Shown here: positions 1-52,798 of the stretch, piece after piece
Layout: every line of letters begins with the position of its first letter
Numbering within the stretch: the first letter of the stretch is position 1
Assembly: GCF_006345805.1 (NCBI RefSeq)
Contig: NW_021833712.1
Coordinates: forward strand, 1-52,798
Length of the DNA stretch: 52,798 nucleotides
From: Octopus sinensis
Taxonomy: Eukaryota
Reading direction: 5' to 3'
Translations under genes and position numbers: made by a program
Notes under the pieces: generated by a model
The model's input: the letters and a program-made list of their open reading frames with translations, nothing else
Database searches by the model: none
What the model was told of the DNA's origin: nothing

Positions 1-39
1 TACTGTTGTTGGTTCCTCAGCTTTTACTTCTGTTGGTTC

Positions 40-12000: not shown

Positions 12001-15000
12001 AAAAGCAAAAGAAACAACAACAGCAGACGCTGAAGAAGCAACAACAACAGTATAGTGAAGTACCAACAACAAAATTAAAAGCAGAAGAACCAACAACAGT
12101 AAAAGCAGAATAACCAACAGCAACAGTAAAATCTGTAGAAACATCAACCACTAAAATCTGAAGAACTAGCAACAACAATAAAAGCAGAACTAACAACAGA
12201 AAAAGCCGAAGAACCAACAGTTATTCTGCTTTTACTGTTGTCGTTGGTTCTTCAGCTTTTACAGTTGTTCATGGTTCTTCAGCTTTTACTGTTGTTGGTA
12301 CTTATGCTTTTACTGTTTTATGGGTTCTTCAGATTTTACTGTTGTTTGTTATTCGTCTTTTAATGCTGTTGATGGTTCTTCAGCTTTTAATGTTGTTGAT
12401 GCTTCTTCATCTTTTACTGTTCTTGGTTCTTCAGCTTTTAATGTTTTTGATGGTTCTGCAGCTTTTCTGTTATATAACAATAAATTCTTTTCTAAAGAAA
12501 CAATAATAAAAGTAAAAGCTGAAGCACAAACAAGAAGTGTAAAAAGCAAAAAAACAACAACAGCAAAAGCTGAAGAACCAACGACAACAGTAAAAGCAGA
12601 ATAACCAACAACAGTAAAATCTGAAGAAACATCAACAACTAAAATCTGAAGAACCAGCAACAACTGTAAAAGCAGAACTAACAACAGTAAAATCCGAAGA
12701 ATCAACGACAGTCATTCTGCTTTTACTGTTGTCGTTGGTTCTTCAGCATTTATTGTTGTCGTTGGTTCTTCGGCTTTAACTGTTGTTGATGTTTCTTCAG
12801 CTTTTACTGTTGTTGGTACTTCAGATTTTACTTTTGTTGTTGGTACTTCATTTTACTGTTGTTGTTGGTTCTTTAGCTTTTACTGTTTTTGTTGCTTCTT
12901 CAGCTTTAATGGGTCTTCAGGTTTTGCTGTTGTTGTTGGTTCTAGAGATCTTACTGTTGTTGATGGTTCTTCAGATTTTACTGTTGGTCTTCGTTATTCA
13001 TCTTTCAATGTTGTTGCTGGTCTCAGCTTTTACTGTTGTTGTTAGTTCTTCAGCTTTTACTGTTTTATTGGTTCTTCAGATTTTACTGTTGTTTGTTATT
13101 CGTCTTTTAATGCTGGTTCTTCAGCTTTTACTGTTTTTGTTGGTTCTTAAGATTTTACTCTTGCCGTTGGTTATGCAGATTTTACTGTTGTTGTTAGTTC
13201 TTCAGATCTTGCTGTTAATGTTTCTTTTGCTTTTTACTCTTGTTTGTGCTTCAGCTTTTACTGTTATTGTAGTTTCTTCAGTTTTTACTCTTGTCGTTGG
13301 CTCTTCTACCTTGTACTGTTGTACTTGGTTCCTCAGATTTTGGAGCTCTTTAGGTGTTACTGTTGTTGGTTATTCAGCTTTTACTGTCGATGCCGGTTCT
13401 TCAGCTTTTACTGTTGTTGGTTCTTCGGCTTTTACTGTTGTTAGTTCTGCTTTTACTGTTGTTGCTGGTTCTTTAGCTTTTACAGTTGTCGTTGGTTCTT
13501 CAGCTTTTACTGTTGTTATTGGTTATTCTGCTTTTACTGTTGTCGTTGGTAGTTCAGATTTTACTGTTATTGGTTCTTCTGCTTTTACTTTTGTTGTTGG
13601 TACTTCATTTTACTGTTGTTTCTTTTGCTTTTTATTGTTGTTATTGGTTCTTAAGAACCATCTTTTACTTTTGTCGTTGGTTCTTCAGCTTTTAATCTTG
13701 TTGTTGGTTATTCAGCTTTTACTGTTGTTGATGGTTCTTCAGATTTTACTGTTTTTGGTTATTCAGCTTTTACTGTTGTTGTTGGTTCTTCAGGTTTTAC
13801 TGTTGTTGGTTCTTCAGCTTTTAATGTTGTTTTTGGTTCTTCAGCTTTTACTGTTTCATTGGCTCTTCAGATTTTACTGTTGTTGTTTGTTATACGGCTT
13901 TTAATGCTTTTACTGTTGTTCAGCTTTTACTGTTGTTGTTCGTTCTTCAGCTTTTATTGTTGTTGATGTTTCTTCACGTTTTACTGTTGTTGTTGGTTAT
14001 TCAGCTTTTACTGTTGTTATTCTGCTTTTACTGTTGTTGGTTGTTCCGCTTTTACTGTTGTTGTTGGTTCTTCAGGTTTTACTGTTGTTGTTGCTTCTTC
14101 AGGTTTTACTGTTGTTGTTGGTTCTTCAGGTTTTACTGTTGTTGATGTTTCTTTTACTGTTGTTATTTGTTATTTTTCTTTTACTGTTGTCGTTGGTACT
14201 TCAGATTTTACTGTTGTTGGTTCTTTAGCTTTTACATTTGTGTTGGTACTTCATTTTACTGTTGTTGTTGGTTCGTCAGCTTTTGCTGTTATTGTTGTTT
14301 CTTCAGTTTTACTCTTGTCGTTGGCTCTTCTACATTGTACTTTTGTACTTGGTTCATCAGCTTTTACTGTTGTTGTTAGTTCTTCAGGTGTTACTGTTGT
14401 TGGTTCTTCAGCTTTTACTGTTGTTGTTGGTTCTTCAGGTTTTACTGTTGTTGTTATTTCTTCACCTTTTACCTTTCTTGTTTGTCCTTCAGGTTTTACA
14501 GTTGTTCTTGGTTCTTCAGCTTTTACTGTTTTTGTTAGTTCTTCAGCTTTTACTCTTGTCGTTGGGCCTTCTACCTTCTACTGTTGTACTTGGTTTATCA
14601 GCTTTTACTGCTCTCGATGGTTCTTTTTTGTTTGTTCTCCAGACTTTTCTGTTGTTGTTGGTTTTTCAGCTTTTACTGTTGTCCTTGGTTCTTCAGGTTT
14701 TACTGTTGTTGATCGTTTTTCAGGTTTTACTGTTGTTGATGTTTCTTTAGCTTTTACTGTTGTTGTTGGTTATTCAGGTTTAACTGTTGTTGATGGTTCT
14801 TCAGGTTTTACTGTTGTTGATGGTTCTTCAGCTTTAACTGTTTTTGTTGGCTCTTCAGCTTTTACTGTTGTTGATGGTTCTTCAGATTTTACAGTTGTTG
14901 TTTGTTATTCAGCTTTTAATGTTGTTGCCGGTTCTGCAGCTTTTACTGTTGTTGGTTCTTCGGGTTTTAGTTTTGTTGTTGGTTCTTCAGCTTTTACTGT

Positions 15001-29683: not shown

Positions 29684-30690
29684 TTAACGGTATCGAACCG
29701 GTGGCAGAATGTTCTTTCTCCATCTGGTGGATCTTGTGCTTCGCACCGGTGTCTGAGATGTGTTGTTGGGCTGCTGATATGTGGTTGATACACGTTGGGG
29801 TGATGATTCTGTGGGTGTTGTCACCAATGCAGCAGGTGTTGTACACGTTTTCCTCGGCAGCTCTGGTGTTAGGCGGATGTGGGCCCTGTTGCGTCTCAGC
29901 TGCCTACCAGATTCTGTTTCTATTATATACGATCTTGGAGTTTCAGCTCCACTGACAACCTGTGCTGGGATCCATGTTTTAGTTATGGGATCTTGAGTAT
30001 GCACATGTTGTCCTCCAAGCATCTCAGGTAAATATTGTGCATGCTTGTTGTAATACCTCTGTGATTGTTCTTGAGTGGCTGCTAGTTTTGCCCTTGTCTC
30101 TTCCTGGTCAATAGGAGGTTGGATCTTAGTTGGCAGGGTAGTTTTATACTTTCTGCCATTCAGCAATTCTGCTGGGGATTTCATATCAGCTCTCAGTGGT
30201 GTCGTTCGTAGGGACAGAAGTGCCAGGTGTGGGTCTTCCTTAGTCTCTCGGCATTTGACTAGTGTTCTCTTCACTGTCTGCACCTGTCTTTCTATAAACC
30301 CATGGCCTTTGGGATAGTGTGGAGATGAAGTTGTAATATTGAACCCATACTCATCGGCTAGCTTTTTGAATTCTTGTGATGTGAACTGGGTTCCCTTGTC
30401 ACATATGATCTGCTCTGGTATTCCTTGCTCTGCTAGGAGCCCTCGAGCCACTGTAGTGATTGTTTTGGCTGTCAGGTCTTTCACTTTTCTCACAAATGGA
30501 AATTTGGAGTAGTAGCAGGCCATTATTAAATACTATTCTTGGCCCTCTGTGAATAGATCTACTCCAATAGTTTGCCATGGCCTTCTTGGGATGTCACTAG
30601 ATATCATTTCCTCCTTTTGTTGTGAGGTTTTGTACTTTTGGCAGATGCGGCATGTAGAAACTGTCTTTTCTATGTCTTTGTACATGCGCT
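29684..30690 (-). CDS. Retrotransposon DDE integrase (one in-frame TAG near 30533)
   Basis: TCRICQK, RPWQTIGVDLF, GIPEQIICDKGTQFTSQEF, SSPHYPKGHGFIERQVQTVK, SPAELLNGRK, TPRSYIIETESGRQLRRNR. Confidence 0.92.
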
Positions 30691-30859
30691 TATTGGTTGT
30701 CACATTTACAATGTGGTGGACCTTTCTGCTTAGTCCTTCCATCTCCTTTTTGTTTGTGATTGGTGGTCGGTCTTTGATAGGCATATCACTGTCAATCCTG
30801 CTTGGAGCTGCTTTCACTTCAGCATTGACCGACACAATATTTAACCTCCTGCAGGTATC

Positions 30860-31262
30860 GAGTCCAAGAATTGATGGGCCTTCTGTTCTTGTGACATATA
30901 GCTTAAATAAAGAAACGGAAACTGTGCCTTTACAACAAATCTGAAACGCAACGAACCAGGAAATTAACAAACAAAACATCGCTTCGCCTTCGGACAACAT
31001 AAACAACGAATCCAAGATGGCGACCCCCGTCGCCGTACAGATGAATCTCGATTGTTTTCCTTTTGTGTGTCCCCTTAATCGTTGTTTTCCCCAGTTGTGG
31101 AATCACATCACTTGGTGTGAGGATTCCTTTTCTGACCCTATCCTCTTCTGTCATATTTTCTGGGAACATCTTGTATAAGCTGACAGGCAAGATATCACTC
31201 TGGGCCCCAGTGTCTATCTTCAGCCTTAAGTCTATGTTTGTTCTTTTCCTTCCGGCCTTCTT
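30860..31262 (-). pseudogene. Aspartic protease remnant, interrupted by an inverted leader copy
   Basis: KIDTGAQSDILP at about 31185-31220. The C-terminal KLYVTRTEGPSILG resumes at about 30903, after the 145-bp insert. Confidence 0.85.
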
Positions 31263-32642: not shown

Positions 32643-34247
32643 AAAAAATGAAGTTCGAAAATGCTGCTGTATTATACAATTTTTAATTTTTATATATACA
32701 TTATAACATGTTTCAGTTCCTGAAATGAACCTTATCAAAAAAAGTTATATATAAAAAAAGACAGCTCATGCCGTCAAACACAAGAAATTCATTTATAATA
32801 CACAACGGAGTCAGACATCTTAGAGTTCATGTATAGTTGATATATAGTTCATGTATAGTTGATATATAGTTTGAAGTATATGTTCAAAGTGTTCGATGCA
32901 GTGGCCCACGGTGGCGATACGTATTCAATACAAGAAACAGATCAAAGTGGTGGAAAGCGGTCAATACAGAAGATTGATGTTTCCGAAAGAGCGAGGAATT
33001 CATTTTTACCTTAAGCAATTGTGATGACCCATGGTGGATGTTCGCTGGGTGGTTCTAGTGGGTTTTGTGAAGTGCTCGGTTTTATAATCAACGTTTTGAC
33101 CAATCGTTTCGTTAGGTGGCTTTAGTCAAGCAGAACGAGACGTCATCATTATTTTGACCAATCGCTGCATTATAACTGCCTCTTGTTTGTTTCCTGTTTT
33201 GACCAGTCGCTTCGTTAGTCAAGCAGAACGGAACGTCATCCAGATTCTGCCCAATCACGACTTATAGCTACATTAGATCTGCCCCCTGTCTGTACTTGTT
33301 AGGTGACTAGTCAAGCAGAAAAGGACGTCATCAATATTCTGACTAATGACTGTCCCCTGTTTGTATCCTGTCCATTCTAGCAGAGCTAGACGTCATCAAC
33401 TTGTTGACCAATCAGAATCGGGTCTGACCCTTAGCTGTATCGTATGTATCAGGGTCAGATTTGCACGAAAGAATTTTTTTCCTTTTTTACTAAGGCATAT
33501 TTCCGTCAGAGCGAGTGTCTGTTTAAAGTAGCGGCCGTGGTGGAATTTTGCTTCTCCTTTTCGGAGGACTTATCTTTTGTTTTAGTATTCTTGGCCCAGG
33601 GTGTTTAAACTTGGTCTAAATTTTTTTATGAAATATAGTTCTTTATTTTGGCGTTGTGTGAAGGTTGCGTTGTCACTGAATTTATAGAGCGGGTTAGTTG
33701 TAAATTTCGGATTTACATTTCCAGCACATGTATCTATGTGTCCGCTGACCGGTATTTTGCGGTAATCAGGGTTTCTAATTTGTGATTTATGCACCGCCAT
33801 TCTGTTACGTAAGCTATTTTTTGTATGGCCTATATACTGCCTATTGCAGCCTGCGCATGTTATGACGTAAATTAAGTTTTCTGATGCGCAGGTGAAGTTT
33901 GTTCTAATGGTGAACTGGTGGCCTTGTTCCAGTATAAATTCTAATCCTTCTTTCAAGATGACACAGATTCCGCAGTTGGGCCTTCCACATTTTCTAACTG
34001 CTGGTTTTGTGGTTGATGTTGAGTGCAGTGTAGCTTGGGTTAAAATCCTTTTCAAGGATTTTGGTTGCCGTTTACTTTTAATGATGGTGTGTGTTTCGAG
34101 GATCCGGTTCATCTTTGGGTCTCCCTTTAGTAGGGCTGTGCTTTGTAGTATGGTGTTGAAGGCCTCATTGTTGAGTGGGTTGTGTGTAGAGATGTAGGGA
34201 AGGGTTTTTAATTGTTCTTTCTGTTTTGGTTTTGTTTGTCTCAGGTC

Positions 34248-34250
<3 letters not shown>
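32640..34250 (-). mobile_element. 5'-truncated Penelope-like element: GIY-YIG endonuclease plus 3' non-coding (pseudo-LTR) region, between (TA)n tracts
   Basis: ORF 33582-34250: LPYISTHNP, KRQPKSLKRIL, CGRPNCGIC, NLIYVITCAGCNRQYIGHT, RMAVHKSQI, ELYFIKKFRPSLN. Confidence 0.92.
33095..33415. promoter_or_regulatory. About 90-bp repeats, each with a CRE-like (GACGTCA) and usually a CCAAT motif
   Basis: TAGTCAAGCAGAA..ACGTCATC at 33123, 33216 and 33308, with a variant at 33378. CCAATC at about 33100, 33158, 33251 and 33408. Function untested. Confidence 0.5.
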
Positions 34251-34325
<75 letters not shown>

Positions 34326-34476
34326 TGGAAGGCTGAGAGTAACAGACGACAATTTTCAACTGGATATAAAAACTATCGTTTATGTTACACATTCATATGT
34401 ATGTGTTTGCATATGCCAAACCACATCCCCACTCTTGGCACTATCTGTTAGTGAACAGTACAAACAGTACAAACAG

Positions 34477-34684: not shown

Positions 34685-35310
34685 GAAACTAAAGATCAGT
34701 ACAATATTCTTTACTACTAAAGGCACAAGGCCCGAAATTTTGGGGGAGGGGAACAGTCGATTAGATCAATCCCCAGTACGCAACTGGTACTAAATCTATC
34801 GACCCTGAAAGGATGAAAGGCAAAGTCTACCTCGGCGGAATTTGAACTCAGAACGTAAAGATAGACGAATTACCGCTAAGTATTTCGCCCGGTGTGCTAA
34901 CGTTTCTTATTTCTTTATTGCCCACAAGGGGCTAAACATAGAGGGGACAAACAAGTACAGACAAACGGATTAAGTCGATTACATCGACCCCAGTGCGTAA
35001 CTGGTACTTAATTTATCAACCCCGGAAGGATGAAAGACAAAGTCGACCTCAGCGGAATTTGAACTCAAAACGTAACGGCAGACGAAATACCAATTTCTTT
35101 ACTACCCACAAGGGGCTAAACACAGAGAGGACAAACAAGGACAGACAAACGGATTAAGTCGATTATATCGACCCCAGTGCGTATATCGACCCCGAAAGGA
35201 TGAAAGGCAAAGTCGACCTCGGCGGAATTTGAATTCAGAACGTAGCGGCAGACGAAACACCGCTAAGCATTTCGCCCGGTGTGCTAATGTTTCTGCCAGC
35301 TCGCCGCCTC
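34685..35310 (-). mobile_element. tRNA-derived SINE, three tandem or nested partial copies (octopus-type)
   Basis: Minus-strand head GGCGGCGAGCTGGCAGAAA (A-box-like) and GTTCAAATTCC (B-box). Repeated core GTCGACTTTGCCTTTCATCCTTTCGGGGTCGAT. Family identity is from recall. Confidence 0.8.
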
Positions 35311-37513: not shown

Positions 37514-37979
37514 GAGTGAGAGAGCAGTGCATGCCATCAAAGTGACACGGGGGTAAAATATACGAAGCCCAGTATACCCATCATGACTACCCGTCTGATA
37601 ACGGTACACCAGGCACATGTAACACAACCATATGTGCGAGACATGGTGATCTCATATCAAGATGTTGAGAGGAATTCTTCGTGGTATTGATAATTCACCT
37701 CTGGAAACATGGGTGTTTTGTTCAACATCCTTAAACAACCCTTATTCAGAGACTTTTTGAGCGGGATGGGCTACTCGACCTGAAGAAAATCCTAACTGGG
37801 CCCCTACCTGCAGGGTTATGCGCTGTATATCTTGATATGAGATCACCATGTCTTGCACATATGGTTGTGATGCATATGCCTCGTGTACCCTTATCAGACG
37901 GGTAGTCATGATAGGTATACTGGGCTTCATATATTTGTATCCCAGTGTCACTTTGATGATATGCACTTCTCTCTGACTC

Positions 37980-38050: not shown

Positions 38051-38240
38051 AACACCGGGGGACGTTTAAGAGAGAACACCGGGGGACGTTTAAGAGAGAA
38101 CACCAGAGGACGTTTAAGAGAGAACACCGGGGGACGTTTAAGAGGAGAACACCGGGGGACGTTTAAGAGAGAACACCGGGGGACGTTTAAGAGAGAACAC
38201 CGGGGGACGTTTAAGAGGAGAACACCGGGGGACGTTTAAG
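38051..38240 (+). repeat. 24-bp tandem repeat x8 at the 5' end of the young R4/Dong-like LINE
   Basis: Units AACACCGGGGGACGTTTAAGAGAG start at 38051, 38075, 38099, 38123, 38148, 38172, 38196 and 38221. The last lacks AGAG and runs into the 5' UTR. Confidence 0.95.
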
Positions 38241-41200
38241 ATGTAAGAAGGAAAATTCAGAGCTCCGAAATCTATCCACAAACATCGAAAACAAGGACAT
38301 CCTATGGAGCCAAAGTTTTACTAACAAAGAATTGGACTGTATCCGAGTAAGTAATACTAATTGAAATTTATTACTATTTTCGAAACGAAATGATGTATTT
38401 TGACTCGATATCATCTCCACCTCTAACGCAACACATGTAAACATGCGTGAAACATCACGATCATCCCCGACGCCAAACGCCATGTACAAAGGAACTACGA
38501 AGAAATTAATGCCACCGATACTATTCAACCCAAGAATAACAATCGAGCGGTACGTACATTAAACTTACAACAAAAAATGTACGAAAAACTACACGTGCGA
38601 ACTAATGTGACAACAGAAATAAACGGACCGGTACCCTACGAAAATGACGACCGTCAAAATAATGGGCCGGACGTTGTACCTCATGTCCCGGAAATAAAAC
38701 CCAAAAGACGTAAATGGACACGTGAGGAATACATTTCTATCTTACACGCATACTTCACAGCAATACTCTACCCAAAAAATGAAAATACAACAACACATAC
38801 ATATAAAATATGGAAGGAAAATAATAGAGATATAGACTTGGATACAGCAATGAACCCTAATAAATTAGCTAACGTACGAAGATACATTCTCAACACAAAA
38901 AAAATATCAGAAATAGAAATAGAACACCTAAAAGAAAACATACACCAGGAAAATGTAGATAGAAGCCACACCAACAATGCCCAATAATATAAACACTGAA
39001 ACTGTAAAACACGAAGACAAACGCAACATTCCCAACAAACACGATGTAAACAACGGAGGGGAGCCTAATGATTATGATAATATAAAAAATAAAATAATCA
39101 AAGAACTGAAAACCACAGAGCTCAAAATGGACCACCGACCATACCTCCCAAGAATCAAAATAAACGAAATAACAACACCTATTATAAACAGCATAAACCT
39201 AGCCGTCACTGAACTGATAGCCACTGAATAAAAAAAAAGTGATATCACTGAACTAAATAACCTAATATACGCAGCAGCCACTGCAGCCACAAAAGAAGCT
39301 GGATACTCACCCAAACCCGCCCAAACAGGAGTACCACCACCCAAACAAACCCTGTGGATAAATAACATCCAAAGCAAAATAAAAAAAAAATTAGAAAAGA
39401 CCTGTCGATTCTTAATGAAATCAACAAACAATCAACGCTACTGAGCAACAAAAAGAGAACAAAAATACTCCGCAAATATAACATCACAGAGAAAGATTTG
39501 CCTGAAATAAAAGAAAAGCTGAAGCAAGATATCCTTGCCAAACCACAAAGGATCCGCCGGTACAAGAAACGCCAACGCTTCTTTGAAGAAGAAAACAAAA
39601 AGTTCAACTCCAACCCCAAAAAGTTCTACCAAGAACTGGGCAAAAATAAAATAGAAGTCACTGCAGCACCAACGGCAGAAGAATTGGAAGAATTCTGGAG
39701 AGAAATATGGTCGGCGAACGAACCACCAAAAAAAAAAAAAAGGAGTATCAAAATAACAAACTCGGCATCTGAACAACTTTGGACCCCCATAACAACTGAA
39801 GAGGTCACCCAGGCACTGCAAAGACTAAGCAACTGGAAGGCACCTGGGCATGACAAGATCCCCAACTTCTGGTTGAAATATCTAACAGGAATGCACAAAA
39901 AGCTGGCTGAAAACTTTAACAACGTACTAGCAGAGCCAGAGACAATGCCTGAATGGCTCACGAAGGGGAAAACCATCTTAATTCCCAAATCAAATGAAAC
40001 AGAAACCAGAAAACTACAGACCAATAACCTGCCTCCCTACTATGTTCAAGGCATTTACTGCAGTGATATCACAAAGGCTGAACAAGCACCTGGACGAAAA
40101 CAAACTGTTCCCAGAAGAGCAGAAAGGATGCCGCAAAGGCTCATATGGCTGTAAAGATCAACTAATAATTAATAAAGCCATAACTGAAGACAGCCACAGA
40201 AAGAAGAAAGGCCTCAGTATGGCCTGGATTGACTACAAAAAGGCGTTTGATAGCATCCCCCACACATGGATCCTCGAAACACTAGCCATTAACAAAGTAG
40301 CACCAACAATCATAAAATTCATAGGGACTCATGAAAACCAAAGACATCCCCATTAGAAGAGGAATATTCCAGGGAGACACGCTCTCTCCACTCCTTTTCT
40401 GCTTGGCACTGTCACCTCTATCTGATATGCTAAATAGAACTGGATGCGGATATAAATGTTACGGCAAAACGATCAGCCACCTTTTATATATGGATGACCT
40501 AAAACTATATGCTGCAAATGACAAACAGCTGGAAACACTATTAAAGACAGTTCATGGATTTACCAAAGAAATAGATATGAAATTTGGATTAGAAAAATGC
40601 GCCAAAGTAACCATGAAAAGAGGAAAACTAGTTAAGAGTAAAACACATCACACTAGATAAAACCAATGAAATAAAAGAATTAGACCAAAGCCAAACTTAC
40701 AAATACTTAGGAATCCATGAACTAGATAAGACACAACACACACAAATGAAAGAGAAAATAAAAAAGAATATTATAGACGAGTTAGATCAATACTAAACAC
40801 AGAGCTCAATGCTAAAAACAAGATAATAGGTATTAACACTTTAGCTGTCCCAGTTATAGGTTACAGCTACAATATCCTTAACTGGACACGAAATGAACTG
40901 ACCAAAATAGATAGGAAAACAAGAAAAATAATGACAGGATCTAGGATGCATCACCCAAAATCTGACATAGAAAGACTATATATACAACGTATAGAAGGTG
41001 GTAGAGGCCTTATACAGCTGGAAAACTACTATAAAATAACCACCATAGGACTGCAAAAATATCTACTTCAGAAGGAAGGAAAACTGATCCAGATAGCGGC
41101 AAAACAAAAAACTGTTCTTAGTATTTAAGGAAGCTGACAAATACAAACAAGAAATCATACCACCAAATAAACACGAAGAAGAAGAAGAAGATGAAGAAAC

Positions 41201-42115
41201 AACAAAAGCTATAAAACAAATGAAATCCAAACTAAAAATAGAACAGCAACGAACCATGATAAAACGATGGCAAGAAAAGCCCCTTCATGGTAAATACTGG
41301 ACTAAACTAAACGCAAAAGAAATAGACAAAGAAAAATCCCAGCAATGGTTGAGAAGCTCAGGACTCAAAGCAGAAACAGAGGGATTTTTAATTGCAGCAC
41401 AAGACCAAAGCCTCCCCACCAGAAATTACCAAAAACATGTAATGAAAAGAAATATTACAAGTAACTGCAGAATATGTGGAGATGGACAAGAAACAATAAA
41501 TCATATTATCTCTAGCTGCCCAGTCCTGGCTAAGAAGGAATATATTCACAGACATGACAGAGTTGGAACCTACATACATTGGAAGCTATGCCAACATTAT
41601 GGAATAACAACAGAAAAAAGATGGTATAGGCACACACCAGAAAAGGTCACAGAAAACGAGAAAGCAACCATACTCTGGGATATGCCGATACACACAGATA
41701 GAGAAATTAAGGCCAACAGACCAGATATAGTTGTCAGAGACCATGAAGAAAAAAAAATGCTTTCTAATTGATGTATCAATACCGGCTGATGACAACGTGT
41801 CTCTAAAAGAAATGGAGAAACTCTCAAAATACAAAGACCTGGAAATAGAGGTAACTAGAATGTGGAATCTGAAAACAGAAACAATTCCTATCATAGTAGG
41901 TGCATTAGGCATGATAAAAAAATATTCAGCCAAATACATAACAAAAACACCAGGACTTACAAACACATATAACATACAGAAAATTGCACTACTAGGCACT
42001 GCACACATCCTACGCAGAACACTTTCCATACAATAACCATCAGAGCATCACAACAAATGACAGCACATACCCAAGGCACACAGTGAAGTGAAAGCACGCT
42101 ATAAAAATAAAACTA

Positions 42116-42161: not shown

Positions 42162-42699
42162 TAATAATAATACGACTTTTCTTCAAAGCCCATCTAGCCA
42201 TGTGGGGACTAAACTTAGTTTGTGCAAAGTCGGCGCACAGCGTCCATTTTTGCACATCTGTTATGCCTCCTCCCCCCACACCATTTTACTCCGTACATGA
42301 ACTGCTTCACCTGGTGACTCATATACTCCTTCTGTGTTGTGTATGGGAGTACATATTTTGCTTATAGCCTTATACCTTCATGCAAGCGCCCGGATGCGTG
42401 TCTTATACTGTTAAAGGTATCTCATATATAAATATTTAGACATATAATACTTAAACCGTCATAAGTAGCCACCCTATTCTCTCTTTCTGCTCAACCTATA
42501 TTTCATATTCTCACACCTACTTCATCTATTGTTAGTTCTTGCTCTAGATATTGTATGAAATGGAGGAAACTGTGATTCATTGCAATTCAATGAATAAACT
42601 ATGTAAACTATGTACCAAAGCTCTATGCTAGCTGGCAAGCGTTTGCGCAGATCTTCTTTTCAGGTGATGACGAAAGTTCTACAACTGCCTTCCCACCAT

Positions 42700-44830
42700 C
42701 ACTCCCAAGTACTCAATCTCGGGGCCGCTACTATTAATGTTGGCACAATGAAAGAAGGATTAGGGAGCGATGCCATATTTATGTGTTGGTGTGCAAGAAG
42801 TAAGATGGAGGGGAGCCTCAGCTAGATTCCTCACCGTTAAGTGACAGAGATTAAAATTCTTCTGGGTAGGTAGGAAAGATGGAGTGGGTGATGTAGGCAT
42901 ACTGTTAGCAGAAAAGTGGGTAGATAAGGTAATTGAGATATTCAGAGTATGTGATAAGGTAATTAAGATGAGACATAGATTAATTAACAGTTACATTTAT
43001 CTCTGCATATGCTCCTCAGTCTGGGCTGGCTGATGAGAAGAAGGACCAATTGTATGAGGTCCTTTTGCAGACTACCTCAATGACAAATGACAGTGATTTT
43101 GTTATTGTAACTGGTGACTTCAATGGACATAGAGCATCTCCATGGATTCCAAGGAGTGCGTGGTGGCTATGGCTTTGGATCCAGAAGTGAGGAGGAAACA
43201 AAACTGCTGGAGTTATGTGATGCAAATCATCTTATGGTCTTTAACACTAACTTCAGAAAACCAGCCAACCAACCAGCCAGCCAGCCAACCACCTAATCAC
43301 TTATCAGGATGTACAACACTTAAGCCTTGTAGCAGCTAACTATAATACTACTACACCAGTCATTGAAGAAGGTGCCTTCCTAAATAACTTGATTAACTAT
43401 ACTCGTGACTAAGCTGTATCATTCACCAACGGAAATTTTAATCATCTTGGCAGTGATGGTGAGCACTTAAGCCAGATTAACCACCTCCTCACTAGGCAAC
43501 GAGATAGATGGATGCTTAAAAATGCAAAATCTTTCCCTGATGAAGAGTAAACAATCCAACATAGGTTACTAGTTAGTGACTTCAGAATTAGAGCTAGAAA
43601 ACTCGGAAAAATAAACCAAACTCGAAAGGAAAATTATGAAAGCTCAGTAAACAGACAAAAGTTTAGAGATTTCCAAATGGAAGTTTCTGACGAAAGAGAG
43701 GAAGAGTTGGGGACATATAGCGTAGAGGACAATTGGAAGTTCCTGCGGGACAATATACCGAGGACTACAGACGAAATCTGTGGTTGGTGCTGAGTCCCAG
43801 CTAGACCAAGGGTGACATGGTGGAGGAACAAGGAGGTAGACAGTGCTATAAAAGCAAAAAGACAGACCTGGAAAGACTGGAAAAATGGTAGAAGCAAATA
43901 ATTATATCAGGTAGTCAGAAGGACAGCGAGGCGACAAGTTTACATAGTAAAAGGAATAGCAGAAGGTAAGAGATTTGTAAATGTTGTACAGCGTGAGGAT
44001 CAGCGATGTGAGGTGTTTAGGATTGTAAAGCAGGTATCAGAGAGAATAGAGATGCGGTGGGTGAGAAATGTATGCGAATGGATAATGATATGCTTGCACT
44101 TAGTGACTCAGAGAAGAAAGATGTATGGAAGAGTCACTATTAAAGGTTACTAAATGTAGAGAAAATGAATAGGAGAAAGAAAGTCTACCAAATATTAAAC
44201 CAATTGAGGGACCAGCCATCAGAGTTGATAGGTAAGGCAATTTAGGATATGAAGACAGGGAAAGCCCTTGGGCCATCAGGAATCACTGCCAAGATGATTA
44301 AAACTTTCGTTGGTGAATGATACAGCTTAGTCACGAGTATAGTTAATCAAGTTATTTAGGAAGGCACCTTCTTCAATGACTGGTGTAGTAGTATTAGTAG
44401 TTAGCTGCTACAAGGGCAAAGGTGATGCCTAAGATAGAAACAACTACAGCGGTATCAAACTGCTAGACCAGTCATAAAAGTTACTGAGAGAGTTATAACT
44501 CGGAGAATTAAACTAGATGAGATGCAGTTAGATTTCGTACCTGGGAAGAGTACCACAGATGTTAACTTCCAAGTGAGACAGCAGCAGGAAAAGTATTTGG
44601 CCAAAAATAAGCCATTGTACAGTAGTGCTGTCCGTAATGTGAAAGTTAGCTATAAATAGTGATGAATTTAGCATACAAGTAGGGGTTCATCAAGTCTCAG
44701 TTCTCAGCTCACTCTTATTCATTATAGTCCTCCAGGCCATAAAAGAGGAATTCAAAACTGGATGCTAATGAGAATTGCTATATTCGGATAACCTTACTCG
44801 TATTGCTGAATCTTTAGCAGAATTCGAAAA
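42700..44830 (+). mobile_element. Degenerate RTE-clade LINE (APE endonuclease + RT)
   Basis: TINVGTM, SAYAPQSG, VTGDFNGH, GYGFGSRSEE..LLELC, KGKGDA..RNNYSGIKLL and QVGVHQVSVLS remnants, with many stops. Confidence 0.85.
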
Positions 44831-45461
44831 GAAATCTCAGGATGTTGGATGTTGAAGAAATAACAATGGACCGAGATGTTTGACAATATGAGGTTCTAGA
44901 GAAGATCTGCCCACATCAGCAAAACTTGAGTTCTAGAAGCACTGTGTGTCCCAACTATACTTAACAAGAAAACTTCTCACACACTCTACCACAACAAACC
45001 AAACTACATATCTTCTCTTCCTCACATTTCCTCCTTCATGCACTATGCTCACCTCCCACTCCCCAATCCTGTCCTCACAGCTCTGTTTCATTGCTATCCA
45101 GTAGACCCCCCCACTCTCTAATCACGCTTCTTTGGTAATGTCCTGCCACTTATATTATGATATCTGAACCTCAAGTATGTGCCCTGGCACTTGCCACCAT
45201 CTATATCTTCTTTCCCTCGACCATCCCATCTCCGTCCCTTGTGAGTATGCCTGGCACTTTGCCACCATCTCTATCCTGCTGTCTCCCACTCTCTCTCTCT
45301 CTCTCCAGCCGGGCAGCCTTGTACTCCTCTACAGCAAGACACCTGTTTGTGTCTCTCTGTCACACTAAAACCTTTCATCATGACACAAGATCACCTCCTC
45401 CAATGCCCCCTCCCATCTCAAAAGAGTTTTTGTCATGGAAGTTACTTGGTGACCCTTTCAG

Positions 45462-45755
45462 TTCAGGTGCCACTTAAAAAGCATCCAGTCCACACTGTAA
45501 AGTGGTTGGCGTTTGGAAGGGCATCCAGCTGTAAAAACCTTGCCAAAACTGACTTCGCTTGTGCTTGTGCTACGTAAAAAGCACTCAGTCCACTCTGTTG
45601 GGTGGTTGGTGTTTGGAAGGGCATCCAGCCGTAAAAATCCTGCCAAAACAGACACAGAAATCTGGTGCAGGCTTCTGCCTGACTAGCTCCTGTCGAAGCA
45701 TTCTTCTCATGCCAGCATGGAAGGCTGACGTTGAACGCTGATGATGATGATGAAA
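45462..45755 (+). mobile_element. Retroposon 3' tail (RTE/SINE-type) with internal duplication, ending in (GAT)n
   Basis: Two copies of GTGGTTGG(C/T)GTTTGGAAGGGCATCCAGC, then CATGCCAGCATGGAAGG...GATGATGATGA. Family assignment is from recall. Confidence 0.55.
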
Positions 45756-46582
45756 TATACAACAGCTTTATATACCTACACCCACCCACACAGACATACA
45801 CACTCGCATGATGTTAATAATGACTTCTAATATGGTTGAAATCTACACAGTTTTGTACATACATATACACCCACACGTATACATTGCTGGATCTCATTTT
45901 GTAAAAGAAGATTATAATACAAACAATAATTGAACTTGGAGGAATGGAAAGTAATGTATTTTCCAATACAATTTAAACAGTAAAGTGCAGCAGTGAATGC
46001 AGTGTTGATGTATCATACATGTATGACTCTCCATTATGTCGGCTTTTGCATTGTTTGATATAAATTAAAAGAACGTATTACTGAATTTCGTGTTGAATCT
46101 TTGAAAGACAATTTAAATATATAAAAACCGTTTGCATCTATTATTCAAAGCAGTAGCAATCGAAAGATTAAGATGTTTTCAAAATATAACTTCACTTACC
46201 CGTTTGTTTTGAAAATGTCCCTAAAAATACAAAACGTGTCATGATTACATATGTAAAATTTGAAGAAAGCCTTTTTGTAAAATTAAAGGTACATGCTGAC
46301 ATCGACATACAGAAAGAAAAACGTTTTTATTGCATTACCAAATTTGCTACAGCTCTTTCAAAGCCAGTTATGGACTTCATATGCATATGCGTTTTTTACA
46401 AATACAATTGTCTATATTTATTAAACGTGAATTGTGATACAAAGCAGAAAAGAAAAATGTGCAAATTGCCCTTATATTTTTGAGTAAAATTACGTTTTTT
46501 TAAAATTTCTCACCAGTCAATTAACGAATATTATTATTTTTTAATACATAAATGATAAATATATTTAAGAAATGAATAATCT

Positions 46583-47056
46583 TATCACAAAATTCACAAA
46601 TGTTCGTGATAAAATACTTTTCATAGTTATAAAATAAATTGATAGGCGCAGGAGTGGCTGTGTGGTAAGTAGCTTGCTAACCAACCACATGGTTCCGGGT
46701 TCAGTCCCACTGCGTGGCATCATGGGCAAGTATCTTCTGCTATAGCCCCGGGCCGACCAATGCCTTGTGAGTGGATTTGGTAGACGGAAACTGAAAGAAG
46801 CCTGTCGTATATATGTATATATATATATATATGTGTGTGTGTGGGGGGGGTTGTGTGTCTGTGTTTGTCCCCCTAGCATTGCTCGACAACCGATGCTGGT
46901 GTGTTTACGTCCCCGTCACTTAGCGGTTCGGAAAAAGTGACCGATAAACTAAGTACTGGGCTTACAAAGAATACGTCCCGGGGTCGATTTGATCGACTAC
47001 AGGCGGTGCTCCAGCATGGCCGCAGTCAAAATGACTGAAACAAGTAAAAGAGTAAT
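46583..47056 (+). mobile_element. tRNA-derived SINE (second octopus-type family)
   Basis: A-box TGGCTGTGTGG, B-box GGTTCAGTCCC, CORE-like TGGGCAAGTATCTTC, internal (TA)/(TG) tract, AAAGAGTAA tail. Confidence 0.8.
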
Positions 47057-47605
47057 GAGTAAAGAGAGTATAGTTCATTTTAGATTTTATTATTTTCTAT
47101 TGTTAGCTATAAAACATAGCATGAAGTCCGATAAGTTCATGTCCTTTTATGTGTGTGATTTTTCAGATTTTCATGGAATTTTTTAACAGATTCTTTCTAC
47201 CTAGTAGTATATACGTTCTTCATTTATATATGCAACTTATAACGCATACTTTTCTCATAGCAGCACAAACAGCGGCCATTCTTTGTGTGACATTCTTCTT
47301 AATAATGTTTAAATTCTTTCCATTACTATTAAAGGCAGCCGAAATTGTTGTAGCCAAATGCCTTTAAATAATACCATGCTTTGTAAAACACACGAAACAT
47401 TTTCAATTCAAAATATTGGGAAATTACTCTTCATTCGCTACCCCATAACAAATAATAGTTCTTTAAAAGTGCTTACAACTAGTGATAAAAGGATATCTTA
47501 AATCAATCTGTTTCATTCAAAGCTGCCCATACCACAATATTATTATGGCAATAAATAGACAGTTGTTACATAATTTGACCAAAAGTAATAAAAAAAAAAT
47601 CTTAC

Positions 47606-47686
47606 CTGCTTTGTAAACAGAATGTGTTAGATAACCTCCACAGAAATCTTCTTTGTTGCCTGGACAGCTTGAATTACAGAGGTCTT

Positions 47687-47739
<53 letters not shown>

Positions 47740-47783
47740 CCATATTTGTCATAACTGTTTCCACAGAAGCAGAGGGCACCATG
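47606..47783 (-). CDS. Internal exon encoding the C-terminal half of a WSC domain with a 17-Ala insertion
   Basis: Acceptor TTTTTAATTAG and donor GCAG|GTAAGA. The 178 nt (phase 0 to phase 1) translate HGALCFCGNSYDKYG(A)17EDLCNSSCPGNKEDFCGGYLTHSVYKA, matching the WSC pattern CxCG..CxxxCxGN....CGG...SVY. An in-frame TAG immediately upstream means the sequence must be spliced. Confidence 0.88.
47687..47739. repeat. (CAG)17 microsatellite, read as (GCT)17 poly-Ala in the minus-strand exon
   Basis: 17 uninterrupted CAG plus CA, counted directly. Confidence 0.97.
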
Positions 47784-47849
47784 CTAATTAAAAAGAAATG
47801 CTCTTTTAGCAAAGTTGATGTTGCTAATATTTTCTACTCTTGACAAAAG

Positions 47850-48186
47850 GCTCGAAATTTTTAGGGAGGGTGTGCAGCCGAATAGATCGACCCCGAAAGG
47901 ATGAAAGGCAAAGTCGACTGCGGCGGAATTTGAACTCAGAACGTAACGGCAGACGAAATGCCTATTTCTTTACTACCCACAAGGGGCTAAACACAGAGAG
48001 GACAAACAAGGACAGACAAACGGATTAAGTCGATTATATCGACTCCGGTGCGTAACTGGCACTCAATTTATCGACCCCGAAAGGATGAAAGGCAAAGTCG
48101 ACTTCGGCGGAATTTGAACTCAGAACGTAACGGCTGACGAAATACGGCTACGCATTTCGCCCGGCGTGGTAACGTTTCTGCCAGCT
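47850..48186 (-). mobile_element. tRNA-derived SINE dimer, same family as 34685-35310
   Basis: Same core and the same internal junction (GACGAAAT(A/G)C followed by C(A/T)ATTTCTTTACTACCCACAAGGGG) as at about 35085. Confidence 0.8.
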
Positions 48187-48435
48187 TCTTTTTAGTTTGT
48201 TGAGTCACAACCCCAAAGATGTGTATCGACTATTAATCCATGAGTGACACAGACAAATTTTAGCTAGTCCTAGTTTGAGGAGATTTATAGATTGTAAAGA
48301 TAATTCTCTGAGAGGAATGTTATTAAATATTAAAACTTGTTGCTGAAAAATTGCTCGTAATAAATTGTAGCTGTGTTGTGTTGCATTTCCCAAAATATAT
48401 TCGCAATTAGACATTCCTAAAATCATGTGAAGATC

Positions 48436-49178
<743 letters not shown>

Positions 49179-49549
49179 AAAATTGGTTAAGAGAGAGAGA
49201 GTGGGAGAAAGAGCGGTAACACTATCATGTAATTGCGCGTACGTTTGTTAAAATATGGAAGTCAACAAAAAATTGACATATCAAAAACTGCTAATTAATT
49301 ATTGTATAGTAGCGCGTCATTCATATTTGTGCGCAATATGTAAACAAAGGAAAACTTAAACGCTATCAAATAGAATTGATAAAAAATTTTTTATATAAAA
49401 TAACTAAAATTACTAAAGCCACAATCGCTATAAATCAATATGTTTACCTCTAATTTAGTTTAATAAATTATTTGCTAACATATAAGAAGGTCAGAAAAAT
49501 TGATTGTCTATCTAATATTGAGAAAACGATCTTAAAAGTAATATGGAGG

Positions 49550-49865
49550 TTAGGACAATACAACAACAACAATACAAACATACGAAACCAAAACAACAAC
49601 AATAGCAATAGCAATGTTAATGACAACAACAATAGTGGCAATAACAATAACAACAATGATAACCACAAACAACTTTAACATCAACAACACAAATGTACGA
49701 AAATAAAAACAACAACAATTATAACAACAGCAATAGCGATGATGATAACAACAATAATCGCAACATCCCACACACAGACAACAATACCAACCACATCATC
49801 CACACCACCACCACTAGCATCAACGCCACCCACAACAATAACAACAACAATAACAATAACAATAC
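49550..49865. repeat. Degenerate (AAC/AAT)n low-complexity tract
   Basis: Imperfect trinucleotide repeats, seen directly. Confidence 0.85.
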
Positions 49866-49869
49866 TGAA

Positions 49870-51790
49870 CATAATACACCTCAATACACATGGGAATGTG
49901 GTGTGTTGTTGTTATATATATATAATGTATTGAGTATTAAAGGAAGTAGTGAGTACTTAGTATGAAAGATTAAGAAAATGAGAGAGACTAAAAAAACGTG
50001 TTAACGATACGAGATACTTTATTAGACTGCCGTTGTTGTACAAGGTATTTGTTGTGGCGGGAAACTTACTGAATGTCCTTGTATCAAGGGAGACAATGGG
50101 CAACGTTGATTGTTCATGTTTGTTGTGATGATTACATAACATCTTCCCTTTTTTATTTTTATTTTTTTTTTATCTGTATCTACAGGGAATAATTATTCGT
50201 CGTCCACTTTTTGTGGTTTTATTATTTTGTAGTGTTGAATTCTGTAGTTGTGCTGTTTTTGTTTTTTCATGCGTGTTTGTTGACTTTGGAAATATATTTT
50301 CATAATCTAATTCTTCTGTTATGCGAACGTGTTCGTTTGTTTTAAGAATATGTTGTCTATTTCGTTTGACTGTATTACCTTCCTCTGTTATTACTAAGTA
50401 TGAACGAGGTTGCTCTAGTTTTTTAATTATTTTGCCCCTTCTAACCAATTGTTGTTAAACTTAATTCTAACCGTGTCGTGTGGTTTTAACTCTGGGAGTT
50501 CTGTTGTAATGTTTGATTTCTTCTTTTCGTGAGGCCTGATACCAATTTTATCGTGTAGTAAGTTTGGGAGATTTGTTCGCAATGTTCTATTCATTATTTG
50601 ATTTGCAGGGGATGGTGCACCATTTTGTAATTTAGTCGTGCGTAATGCTCTTGAATGCCTTTTTTAGAGTCTTTTTTATTGTCTGTATATTTCTCTCAAC
50701 CATGCCATTCGCTTGATGATAATGCGGGCTTGTCTTCGTGTGATGAAAATGCCATTTTTTTGCAAATTTTTTGAATTCAGCCGAATTGAATTCTGGACCG
50801 TTGTCACTTATAACTGTTTGCGGAATTCCGAATTTAGCAAAAGTTTCTTTTAATTTTTTGATTACGGTTTTTGACTGGCAAACATTTATTTCGTGTAGAT
50901 CAAAAAATCTTGTTGTATAGTCAATAATTGTGACATACGAATTTCCAGACAGGTGAAATACGTCTGTACCCACTTTGGTCCATGGTGTAGTAGGTATTTC
51001 ATGATTTATTAGTGGTTCGGCTGATTGCTGTTTTTTGTAGTCGATGCAGTATGAGCATGTGTTAATCATGTCTTTGATTTGAGCGTTAATGCCAGGCCAG
51101 TATATATATTTTTTTATTTTTATTATCATCTGTATTTTGGGTTCTTTTAGTATTCTGACACCATGTTGTTGTTATAAATATATAATGTATTGAGTATTAA
51201 AGGAAGTAGTGAGTACTTAGTATGAAATATTAAGAAAATGAGAGAGACTGAAAAAACGTGTTAACGATACGAGATACTTTATTAGACTGCCGTTGTTGTA
51301 CAAGGTATTTGTTGTGGCGGGAAACTTACTGAATGTCCTTGTATCAAGGGAGACAATGGGCAACGTTGATTGTTCATGTTTGTTGTGATGATTACATAAC
51401 ATGGTGCAACATACTCCAACCCAAGAAAAGGACTGCACAAAATTTCCAAGCATTCAACAACGATGTTCCTACGCTATACGGGTTACGTAAGGACCGTAAA
51501 TCCTATGTGAACCCTGTTATGGGCTCCCCAACCCGGCCTGTCTGTGGAGCGAATATCTCCAGCAATTATAGGCTATTCTACTTCCTCTCACAGGTGTTAC
51601 GACCACTCATTGAAATGTCCCCAGATGCGAGCACGGGGGATCTAAGTAGAATCAGTAGTCGCAATTACTCCAACGGCCTCATGGGTTGTGTAGTGGGTTG
51701 TATGGATGTCGTTTCATTCTACCCATCTATAGACAGATTTTGCTGTGGAAAAATGTACTGAGATTACTGTGAGATTGAGGTAGTTCTGCG
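49870..51790 (+). mobile_element. Penelope-like RT fragment (host of the integrase-only LTR element)
   Basis: Removing the LTR element rejoins HMGMWCNILQP..DVPTLYGLRKDRK..PTRPVCGA..FLSQVLRPL..MDVVSFYPSID in one frame. Confidence 0.75.
49904..51401 (-). mobile_element. Young internally deleted Ty3/gypsy element retaining only integrase
   Basis: LTRs 49904-50141 and 51164-51401 (238 bp, TG...CA, 3 mismatches seen). 5-bp TSD TGGTG. PBS TGGTGTCAGAA (51153-51163, tRNA-Leu-like). PPT AAGGGAAGA. Internal 1 kb encodes YWPGINAQIK..PWTKVGTDVF..ISDNGPEF..NGMVERNIQTIK..PRSYLV. Confidence 0.95.
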
Positions 51791-52654
51791 AAGCCAACAC
51801 GAGGGAACTGGGCCTCCTCCTTAAACTAAGCTATGACTGTAACTACCTAGATAAACATGACCAGGTCACAGAGGGGAAGACCACCCACCATCACCTTGGC
51901 AGCGAAGAAAAGCACCACAGAGCGCTGGAATGGTTTGAACCATACTCACCCGGGACCCTAAGAACAACAGTTAGGTGAAAAGAATGATTGCACATGCAAT
52001 AGGAACTAACATAAGAACCATGGTTGCCAATTTAGCATATTTTATGCTAGATTTAGCATTTTTTTCAGCATTTAGCAGAAAATTTTTGAATCTAGCATTT
52101 AGCAAGGAAAATAGGTTTAAAATTTTATTTAGCATTTTTTTTAGCATTTTTCTCTGATCATGATATTTCTCCAATAGTTACCATTTTTTCTTCTTTTTCC
52201 TCCTTTTCTACTTTCGTTAATTTTCTTTCGCTTTCATGAAACTTCAAATGAAGATTTATTCAAAAAGAAGTTTATCAAGTTAAGAATTTTTCCATCCCCT
52301 CCCCCGGCCTGGATACGGAGTGGTGCTGGTGGGGGAGGGGAGAATATAATTCATGTCAGCACCTGAACTCACTACATAATAATGTAAATATGTTGCAAAT
52401 AATGAAATTTGTTCTAACAATGCTTTATTCTGTAGTGGTGAGTTTTTATCATGACAGGTTGTCTGATTTACTTTCAGTTTGACTGTTTTAAAATAGACGT
52501 GTATTTTTCATGCTTGTTTTGGATTATATATCTTGTGTAGAAGTATGGGTTTGGCAGGGGTCTTCCCCTTTATATTTCTACTTTTTTTTTCAAGTATCTC
52601 TTATGATAATTGTAGTTATATTTCTGGCTTTATCAATAGATATTAAATGTAAGA

Positions 52655-52798
52655 TTGAAAGCGAGCTCCACCACTTTGATGACATCTTAAATGTACTAAC
52701 TGAGGGCTCCAACGCGGATGTCATATACCTTGATTTCAGCAAGGCCTTTGATAGAATCAACCATAATATATTGTTAAAGAAATTATACAACGCTGGAG
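52655..52798 (+). mobile_element. CR1/L2-type LINE RT fragment running off the window
   Basis: HFDDILNVLTEGSNADVIYLDFSKAFDRINHNILLKKLYNAG. Confidence 0.85.

Follow-up and report, generated by a model that had tools for sequence, protein, structure and literature searches.

Does a run of 17 identical alanine codons, read in a frame that no listed open reading frame covers, lie in a genuine coding exon, and if it does, is the run an old property of the protein, a recent expansion or a sign that the gene copy is falling apart? The question is raised by a 52,798-nucleotide stretch of Octopus sinensis DNA (hereafter 'the window'), in which a first-pass annotation, made from the letters alone, had placed the run inside an exon for a WSC domain. 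We have compared the exon with protein profiles, solved structures and related octopus loci, and weigh here the explanations that could account for it.

The exon and its host gene

According to Tandem Repeats Finder, plus-strand positions 47687–47739 form a period-3 array of 17.7 CAG copies with 100% purity. This array includes partial flanking units; the alanine tract itself occupies 47688–47738 on the minus strand, where 17 of 17 codons are GCT, corresponding to (CAG)17 on the plus strand. It is an uninterrupted single-codon run of the kind expected of slippage-prone coding microsatellites, and the sole CAG/GCT-type trinucleotide run of at least five units in the whole window. The exon that carries it spans 47606–47783 on the minus strand (178 nt, or 59 codons plus one base), starting in phase 0 and ending with the extra base. 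Read from 47783 to 47607 it is stop-free and encodes HGALCFCGNSYDKYG-A17-EDLCNSSCPGNKEDFCGGYLTHSVYKA. A TAG lies in frame directly upstream, and its AG (47785–47784) closes a pyrimidine-rich tract, tttctttttaattag; the polypyrimidine tract and AG form the 3′ splice site at 47784–47800 on the minus strand, catttctttttaattag/CAT. On the same strand the 5′ splice site, GTAAGA at 47600–47605, follows ...AAAGCAG (that is, CAG/GTAAGA) and is needed to join the exon in frame to a microexon described below. In an ORF scan of the window, no ATG-, GTG- or TTG-initiated open reading frame of at least 150 amino acids covers the exon, in keeping with the earlier description of a pure 17-alanine tract in an unlisted frame. 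A poly-glutamine frame on the plus strand of the repeat was considered and rejected for lack of support. An RNA-level role finds no support either: the repeat does form the expected CUG-type hairpin, yet folding of the whole exon is no stronger than that of shuffled controls (z +1.37).

The exon peptide matches the Pfam WSC profile (PF01822) with a score of 28.7 bits (curated gathering cut-off 27.8; E 1.5e-6), and the match is still significant after allowing for the ∼1,200 stop-free segments in the window. The match runs unbroken over profile positions 47–82 of 82, with the alanines handled as an insertion; when they are reduced to one, the score becomes 29.9 bits. The exon corresponds to the C-terminal half of the second WSC domain of the host protein, comprising the β4 strand with its CxC motif, the L5 loop, the CGG motif and β5. 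All the cysteines of the C-terminal half, namely the CxC pair, the one bonding to β1 and an intra-loop pair, are in place (C5, C7, C36, C40 and C48 of the exon peptide, with G49–G50 completing CGG), and they align to C167, C169, C186, C190 and C198 of Kremen1. Among solved structures the best sequence matches are to the human Kremen1 WSC domain, which reads GYACFCGNNPDYWKYGEAASTECNSVCFGDHTQPCGG. Membership of the Kremen family was rejected because the orthologue described below has PAN and WSC domains only and no Kringle or CUB domain; its similarity to Kremen1 does not extend beyond the WSC domain. By sequence comparison, the feature is a genuine WSC-domain coding exon, as had been proposed.

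An exhaustive HMMER search of 1.84 billion representative proteins returned 38 hits, of which the only close match (E 4.5e-22) was XP_014771072.2 (P0002 in our collection; UniRef A0A0L8HMG8, 'WSC domain-containing protein'), annotated as 'uncharacterized protein LOC106869731 [Octopus bimaculoides]'. It is this match that places the exon beyond chance. The protein has 517 amino acids, with two PAN domains, a Thr-rich linker and three WSC domains that together score 168 bits, and its hydrophobic N-terminus looks like a signal peptide. Residues 374–418 represent the same exon and read HGSLCFCGNSYDKYG-AAA-EDLCYSSCPGNKEDFCGGYLTNSVYKA. Two O. sinensis proteins share its 90% cluster: XP_036364068 ('WSC domain-containing protein ARB_07867 isoform X2'), with 505 amino acids, four WSC domains and AAA at the tract site, and XP_036364440 (LOC118765861), with 408 amino acids and a model that ends in the middle of WSC2. 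Outside the tract, 39 of 42 residues of the window's exon are identical to XP_014771072.2, and 39 of 42 to XP_036364068. The remaining significant hits are WSC proteins from fungi and unidentified metagenomic sources, at ∼25–50% identity. No protein in the collections searched, whether by exhaustive HMMER or by a word-indexed search, contains the exon with A17, although negatives of the latter method are untrustworthy for short queries (it missed XP_014771072.2 despite more than 20 shared five-residue words). A literature search found no paper on the LOC106869731-type gene or on WSC proteins in octopus. The host gene is orthologous or very closely paralogous to LOC106869731. Its product, predicted to be secreted and of the sugar-binding type, would combine two PAN/Apple domains with a mucin-like, Thr-rich linker and three or four WSC domains; the family to which it belongs is an annotated but uncharacterised octopus PAN–WSC family.

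The locus and the state of the gene copy

The orthologous exon of O. bimaculoides lies at 84702–84837 of the locus CM046613.1:27701620-27802680 (L001). It has the same acceptor (ttaattag/CAT) and the same donor (CAG/gtaaga), and reads GGT GCT GCT GCT GAA at the tract site; the splice sites proposed for the window thus coincide with the exon borders of an existing gene model. Outside the tract 132 of 136 nt are identical (97.1%), the four differences being S>A, Y>N, N>H and one synonymous change, while the 200–400 nt of intron on each side are 90–93% identical with many indels. Purifying selection cannot be demonstrated from the exon, because the substitution counts are too small (three nonsynonymous to one synonymous).

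The minus strand of the window is colinear with L001 77444–89379 from position 52798 down to 42228, a distance of ∼10.5 kb, and the identical exon borders together with the colinear flanking introns place the exon in the LOC106869731 orthologous group. On this strand, the 3′ part of the upstream intron (47801–52798) aligns with L001 77444–84701 in blastn blocks of 76–89% identity; the intron between the WSC exon and the microexon (46221–47599) is colinear in blastn with L001 84838–85835; and the first ∼4 kb of the downstream intron (42228–46199) align with L001 85857–89379 at 84–90%. Colinearity is interrupted by a retroelement insertion in the window's upstream intron (∼49904–51401), whose integrase ORF at 50635–51171 matches Pfam rve / Integrase_H2C2, and by 3.6 kb found only in O. 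bimaculoides. The intron between exon and microexon carries a SINE-like element at ∼46570–46940, identified by SINE-family hits to the O. sinensis locus CM016871.1:18868419-18922627 (L002). The window does not overlap L002. Introns of O. sinensis are 86–92% identical to those of O. bimaculoides, about as distant as the window's introns are, and for the transposon copies of the window the matches to O. sinensis reach 96–99%, which makes O. sinensis, O. vulgaris or a near relative the probable source of the window. Two apparent similarities were discarded: a seemingly colinear block at 37663–37748 is a SINE-family match and not orthology, and a (GCT)7 run in L002, considered as an exon remnant, is an intronic compound microsatellite.

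The claim that the WSC exon is the only host exon in the window did not survive this comparison. A conserved 21-nt microexon of the same gene, GGACATTTTCAAAACAAACGG, lies at 46200–46220 on the minus strand, flanked by tttttag/ and /gtaagt; it reads (G)TFSKQT, preserves the phase and codes for the linker between WSC2 and WSC3. Its counterpart in O. bimaculoides (L001:85836–85856) encodes GKISKET, with 91.6% identity over the 143-nt alignment around it, and XP_036364068 of O. sinensis reads GKFSKQT at this position. Reading through the donor of the WSC exon (GGT AAG ATT) would also give 'GKI', as if a different donor were used, but this is a coincidence, since the O. bimaculoides residues are encoded by the separate 21-nt microexon. 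The exon for the N-terminal half of WSC2, with the β1 cysteine and two helix cysteines, is present in the orthologue and lies ∼27 kb upstream in O. bimaculoides. The window offers 5 kb on that side, and the upstream exon falls outside it, as the first-pass annotation had supposed. Neither that exon nor any further exon besides the WSC exon and the microexon was found in the window by motif scan or by tblastn with both octopus proteins.

Much of the remaining window is repetitive. Roughly 24 kb (1–23700) consist of a satellite with a 27-bp unit, TAAAAGCTGAAGAACCAACAACAACAG, and 24- and 51-bp variants, in blocks of both orientations, organized into higher-order repeats of 4.9–5.7 kb that are 92–95% identical (1–4149, 4921–8884 and 10605–14696). 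One frame of the satellite encodes a (K/T)AEEPTTTV-like repeat in stop-free stretches of up to 373 amino acids with no Pfam match, and neither of the fetched loci, from O. bimaculoides and O. sinensis, contains an exact copy of the unit's 20-nt core. Retroelement ORFs were identified with Pfam at 29687–31015, 33585–34352, 41220–41768 and 50635–51171, the retroelement debris amounting to three integrase-type ORFs (rve, Integrase_H2C2), one Penelope-like GIY-YIG ORF and one LINE zf-RVT ORF. A 24-bp tandem repeat, AACACCGGGGGACGTTTAAGAGAG, present in ∼8 copies of 95% identity at 38051–38241, sits within the transposon-rich stretch. A SINE-like element (core ...gaccccgaaaggatgaaaggcaaagtcgac...) occurs just upstream of the exon (47860–48230) and again at 34703–35309; in O. 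bimaculoides the same SINE family is found upstream of the orthologous exon (L001 84256–84659) and beside the preceding exon (57216–57631).

Whether the exon belongs to a working gene turns on what lies beyond the microexon. In O. bimaculoides the next two exons, which encode WSC3, start ∼4.1 kb past it. In the window, a motif scan and tblastn with P0002 and P0058 recovered no exon for WSC3 from the 46 kb that follow the microexon; colinearity breaks off below 42228, giving way to LINE, LTR-type and Penelope-like fragments and then to the ∼24-kb satellite. Given that the WSC3 exons are missing from 46 kb, this could be an intact copy in which one intron is huge, or a paralogue in decay. Decay has a precedent close at hand. 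At L002 43967–46889, in LOC118765861, homology to O. bimaculoides stops 8 nt before the end of the exon for the N-terminal half of WSC2; past the break lies a LINE-like element, followed by exons that match WSC4 in the sister copy, and the protein model runs on into junk sequence. This gene lacks exactly four exons, those for the C-terminal half of WSC2, the microexon and the N- and C-terminal halves of WSC3. Since LOC118765861 is broken, structural decay of copies in this gene cluster is a fact.

A possibility that the first-pass annotation did not weigh is that the window's exon, too, sits in a disrupted copy on its way to decay: a WSC gene duplicated locally, of which this would be a pseudogene or fragment, its alanine run having grown once selection was gone. 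Several observations would fit: the 46 kb without WSC3 exons where O. bimaculoides has them at ∼4 kb; the abrupt end of colinearity at 42228, followed by mixed retroelements and a satellite absent from both loci fetched; the presence in O. sinensis of at least two gene copies, one of them broken and lacking exactly these exons; three nonsynonymous differences to one synonymous against O. bimaculoides; three residues changed in the window alone (Y>N, N>H and K>T), compared with one in the O. sinensis copy, over the same 49 codons; and the failure to recover a protein with the exon and A17 from the collections searched, part of that negative being unreliable. Against this, neither exon nor microexon has lost its open frame or its canonical splice sites, the exon is 97% identical to that of O. 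bimaculoides where the introns are only 90–93% identical, and long introns are plausible in a gene that has a 27-kb intron in O. bimaculoides. We regard decay as a serious possibility that nevertheless falls well short of probable, and give an intact, expressed copy somewhat better than an even chance.

Origin and position of the alanine tract

The tract site holds three alanines in O. bimaculoides DNA and in the O. sinensis protein XP_036364068, and 17 in the window; a difference in length between close relatives is a second hallmark of slippage-prone microsatellites. Because A3 is found in both O. bimaculoides and O. sinensis, parsimony makes A3 the ancestral state and A17 a gain of 14 units. 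The tract is accordingly best read from these alignments as a derived expansion from (GCT)3 to (GCT)17 and not as an old fixed feature. A long tract shared by orthologues, the outcome that the first-pass annotation had set against its own proposal, is not what the relatives display.

The length itself might be questioned, in that the 17 units could be an assembly or sequencing artefact and the true allele have about three. A single sequence of this locus from the same species was available, and the lengths of short tandem repeats are error-prone in some long-read assemblies. Yet an artefact that added 14 perfect units (42 nt) and kept the frame would be unusual, and the flanks of the tract are clean and colinear with the orthologue. 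We consider this explanation most improbable.

The expansion has taken the loop beyond the usual range of the domain. We counted loop lengths in 163 WSC domains from 59 retrieved homologues, a sample biased towards relatives of the query: from the CxC motif to the next cysteine there are 12–18 residues in 162 of them and 29 in one, as compared with 28 in the window. From the aromatic-Gly pair to the cysteine there are 4–10 residues in 79 homologous domains and 20 in the window, which bears out the earlier statement that the tract lies between conserved cysteines in a normally short loop. The sole alanine-rich hit, P0004, was set aside as an unrelated low-complexity protein.

In Kremen1, the WSC domain is a β1–β5–β3–β4–β2 sheet packed on one helix and held by the disulfides C122–C186, C147–C167, C151–C169 and C190–C198 (PMC5014086). 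Yeast Wsc1 has the same PAN/Apple-like core, around which a long loop, L5, wraps, starting just after the CxC strand; the C-terminal part of L5 is conserved in the solved WSC structures (PMC9024836), and we infer that its N-terminal part is the more variable one. Alignment to the solved structures puts the alanines between the equivalents of C169 and C186, and so in the N-terminal part of L5. In an AlphaFold2 model of the orthologue, which has a mean pLDDT of 70 and values of 64–94 per 10-residue block in the WSC domains, AAA389–391 lies between a strand (377–381, LCFCG) and a short helix (392–395), in blocks with pLDDT 85 and 75, the latter being the lowest in WSC domain 2. This model, with its three alanines, matches Kremen1 (5FWS) in Foldseek with E 1.3e-7 and yeast Wsc1 (7PZ2) with TM 0.74–0.77 and an rmsd of 2.1–2.5 Å; the A3 orthologue model has the PAN/Apple-like fold with the L5 wrap.

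Runs of identical codons are prone to slippage and poorly conserved between species; pure codon runs make up more than their share of the amino-acid repeats that vary in length, GCT/CTG ranking with the most frequent, while the mean codon homogeneity of human alanine repeats is only 0.37 (PMC1557989). The codon homogeneity of the A17 tract is 1.0, and its ancestral seed, (GCT)3, was already pure, from which we infer recent stepwise slippage and not unequal recombination. In the history that we propose, ancestral GGT-(GCT)3-GAA (YG-AAA-ED) would have grown in frame to (GCT)17 in the lineage or the copy that the window represents, most likely because replication slipped on a run that amounts to a CTG/CAG microsatellite. 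The 14 additional alanines lengthen the stretch between the CxC strand (β4) and the cysteine that bonds to β1, while the frame, the two splice sites, the disulfide framework and the CGG motif are all unaffected. The insertion may be tolerated as a surface excursion; it would then be neutral to mildly harmful, young and probably variable in length among individuals. Against such tolerance of 17 alanines, no WSC homologue that we recovered has an alanine run of four or more in the tract loop.

The first-pass annotation had speculated that the tract might be a length-polymorphic 'tuning knob' or a damaging allele. In a more purposeful version of the former, the tract would be under selection and its variable length would alter ligand binding, spacing or self-association of the secreted protein. 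Its setting could be read in this way, as the tract lies in a surface loop wrapping the WSC core and pure repeats mutate fast (PMC1557989). The adjacent Y>N change, specific to the window (47676–47668, minus-strand codons AAT TCA AGC), converts EDLCYSSC to EDLCNSSC; the N-S-S that results, immediately behind the expanded loop, is a potential sequon for N-glycosylation and might be counted in favour. But two related genomes manage with three alanines, nothing similar is seen in the 163 homologous domains, and a young neutral expansion accounts for the same facts. We therefore think selection for a tuning function very unlikely. It is unlikely also, though a little less so, that the locus produces an expressed, secreted protein with a length-varying A17 in the wrapping loop of a lectin-like PAN/WSC-fold domain, with effects on secretion, self-association or ligand spacing. 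The explanation that we favour, with somewhat more confidence than doubt, is that of a genuine exon of a LOC106869731-type gene whose tract is young, expanded by slippage and tolerated.

Comparison with known systems

The closest counterparts of the exon, in O. bimaculoides LOC106869731 and O. sinensis XP_036364068, have the same exon with the same borders, the same downstream microexon and the same introns as the window. They differ from it in having AAA, where the window has A17 together with Y>N and N>H in the exon and K>T in the microexon, and the window displays two exons only. Kremen1 (5FWS) and Wsc1 (7PZ2) share with the window the CxC...C...C...CGG framework, and the orthologue model has the same fold; at the position of the tract Kremen1 reads KYGEAASTEC, and it has 16 residues from the CxC motif to the next cysteine as against 28 in the window. 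The domain contexts are different: Kringle–WSC–CUB in Kremen1, a fungal membrane sensor in the case of Wsc1, and in the octopus gene two PAN domains, a mucin-like linker and three to four WSC domains in a protein predicted to be secreted.

The annotation picture is corrected whichever account of the gene copy holds, in that the window has two PAN–WSC exons whose orthologues are annotated in two octopus genomes. If the A17 form is expressed and varies in length, it would be a rare instance of microsatellite-driven variation inside a disulfide-bonded extracellular fold. An expressed copy would show, as a natural experiment, how much homopolymer the wrapping loop of a rigid, disulfide-locked extracellular fold can absorb, and would supply the octopus gene family with a handy polymorphic marker. 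A dead copy would be no more than a small example of how repeats drift once a gene has been disrupted, here in a genome full of transposons and satellites.

In the human polyalanine-expansion disorders (PHOX2B, HOXD13, PABPN1 and others) alanine runs are likewise lengthened in frame, and a run of 17 is near the length range seen in disease. The human runs use mixed GCN codons and are found in disordered regions of nuclear proteins, and unequal recombination is their supposed source. The octopus tract is unlike them, being pure GCT and situated in a loop of a disulfide-bonded extracellular domain, and does not belong to that class. It resembles the polymorphic coding CAG/CTG microsatellites, which are also pure trinucleotide runs with large length gaps between close relatives and for which slippage is expected (PMC1557989); it differs from these in encoding alanine (GCT) instead of glutamine or leucine, and in lying in a folded domain and not in a low-complexity region. 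Coding trinucleotide expansion is a well-known type of mutation; what is uncommon here is the host, a loop in a small, rigid extracellular fold with four disulfides.
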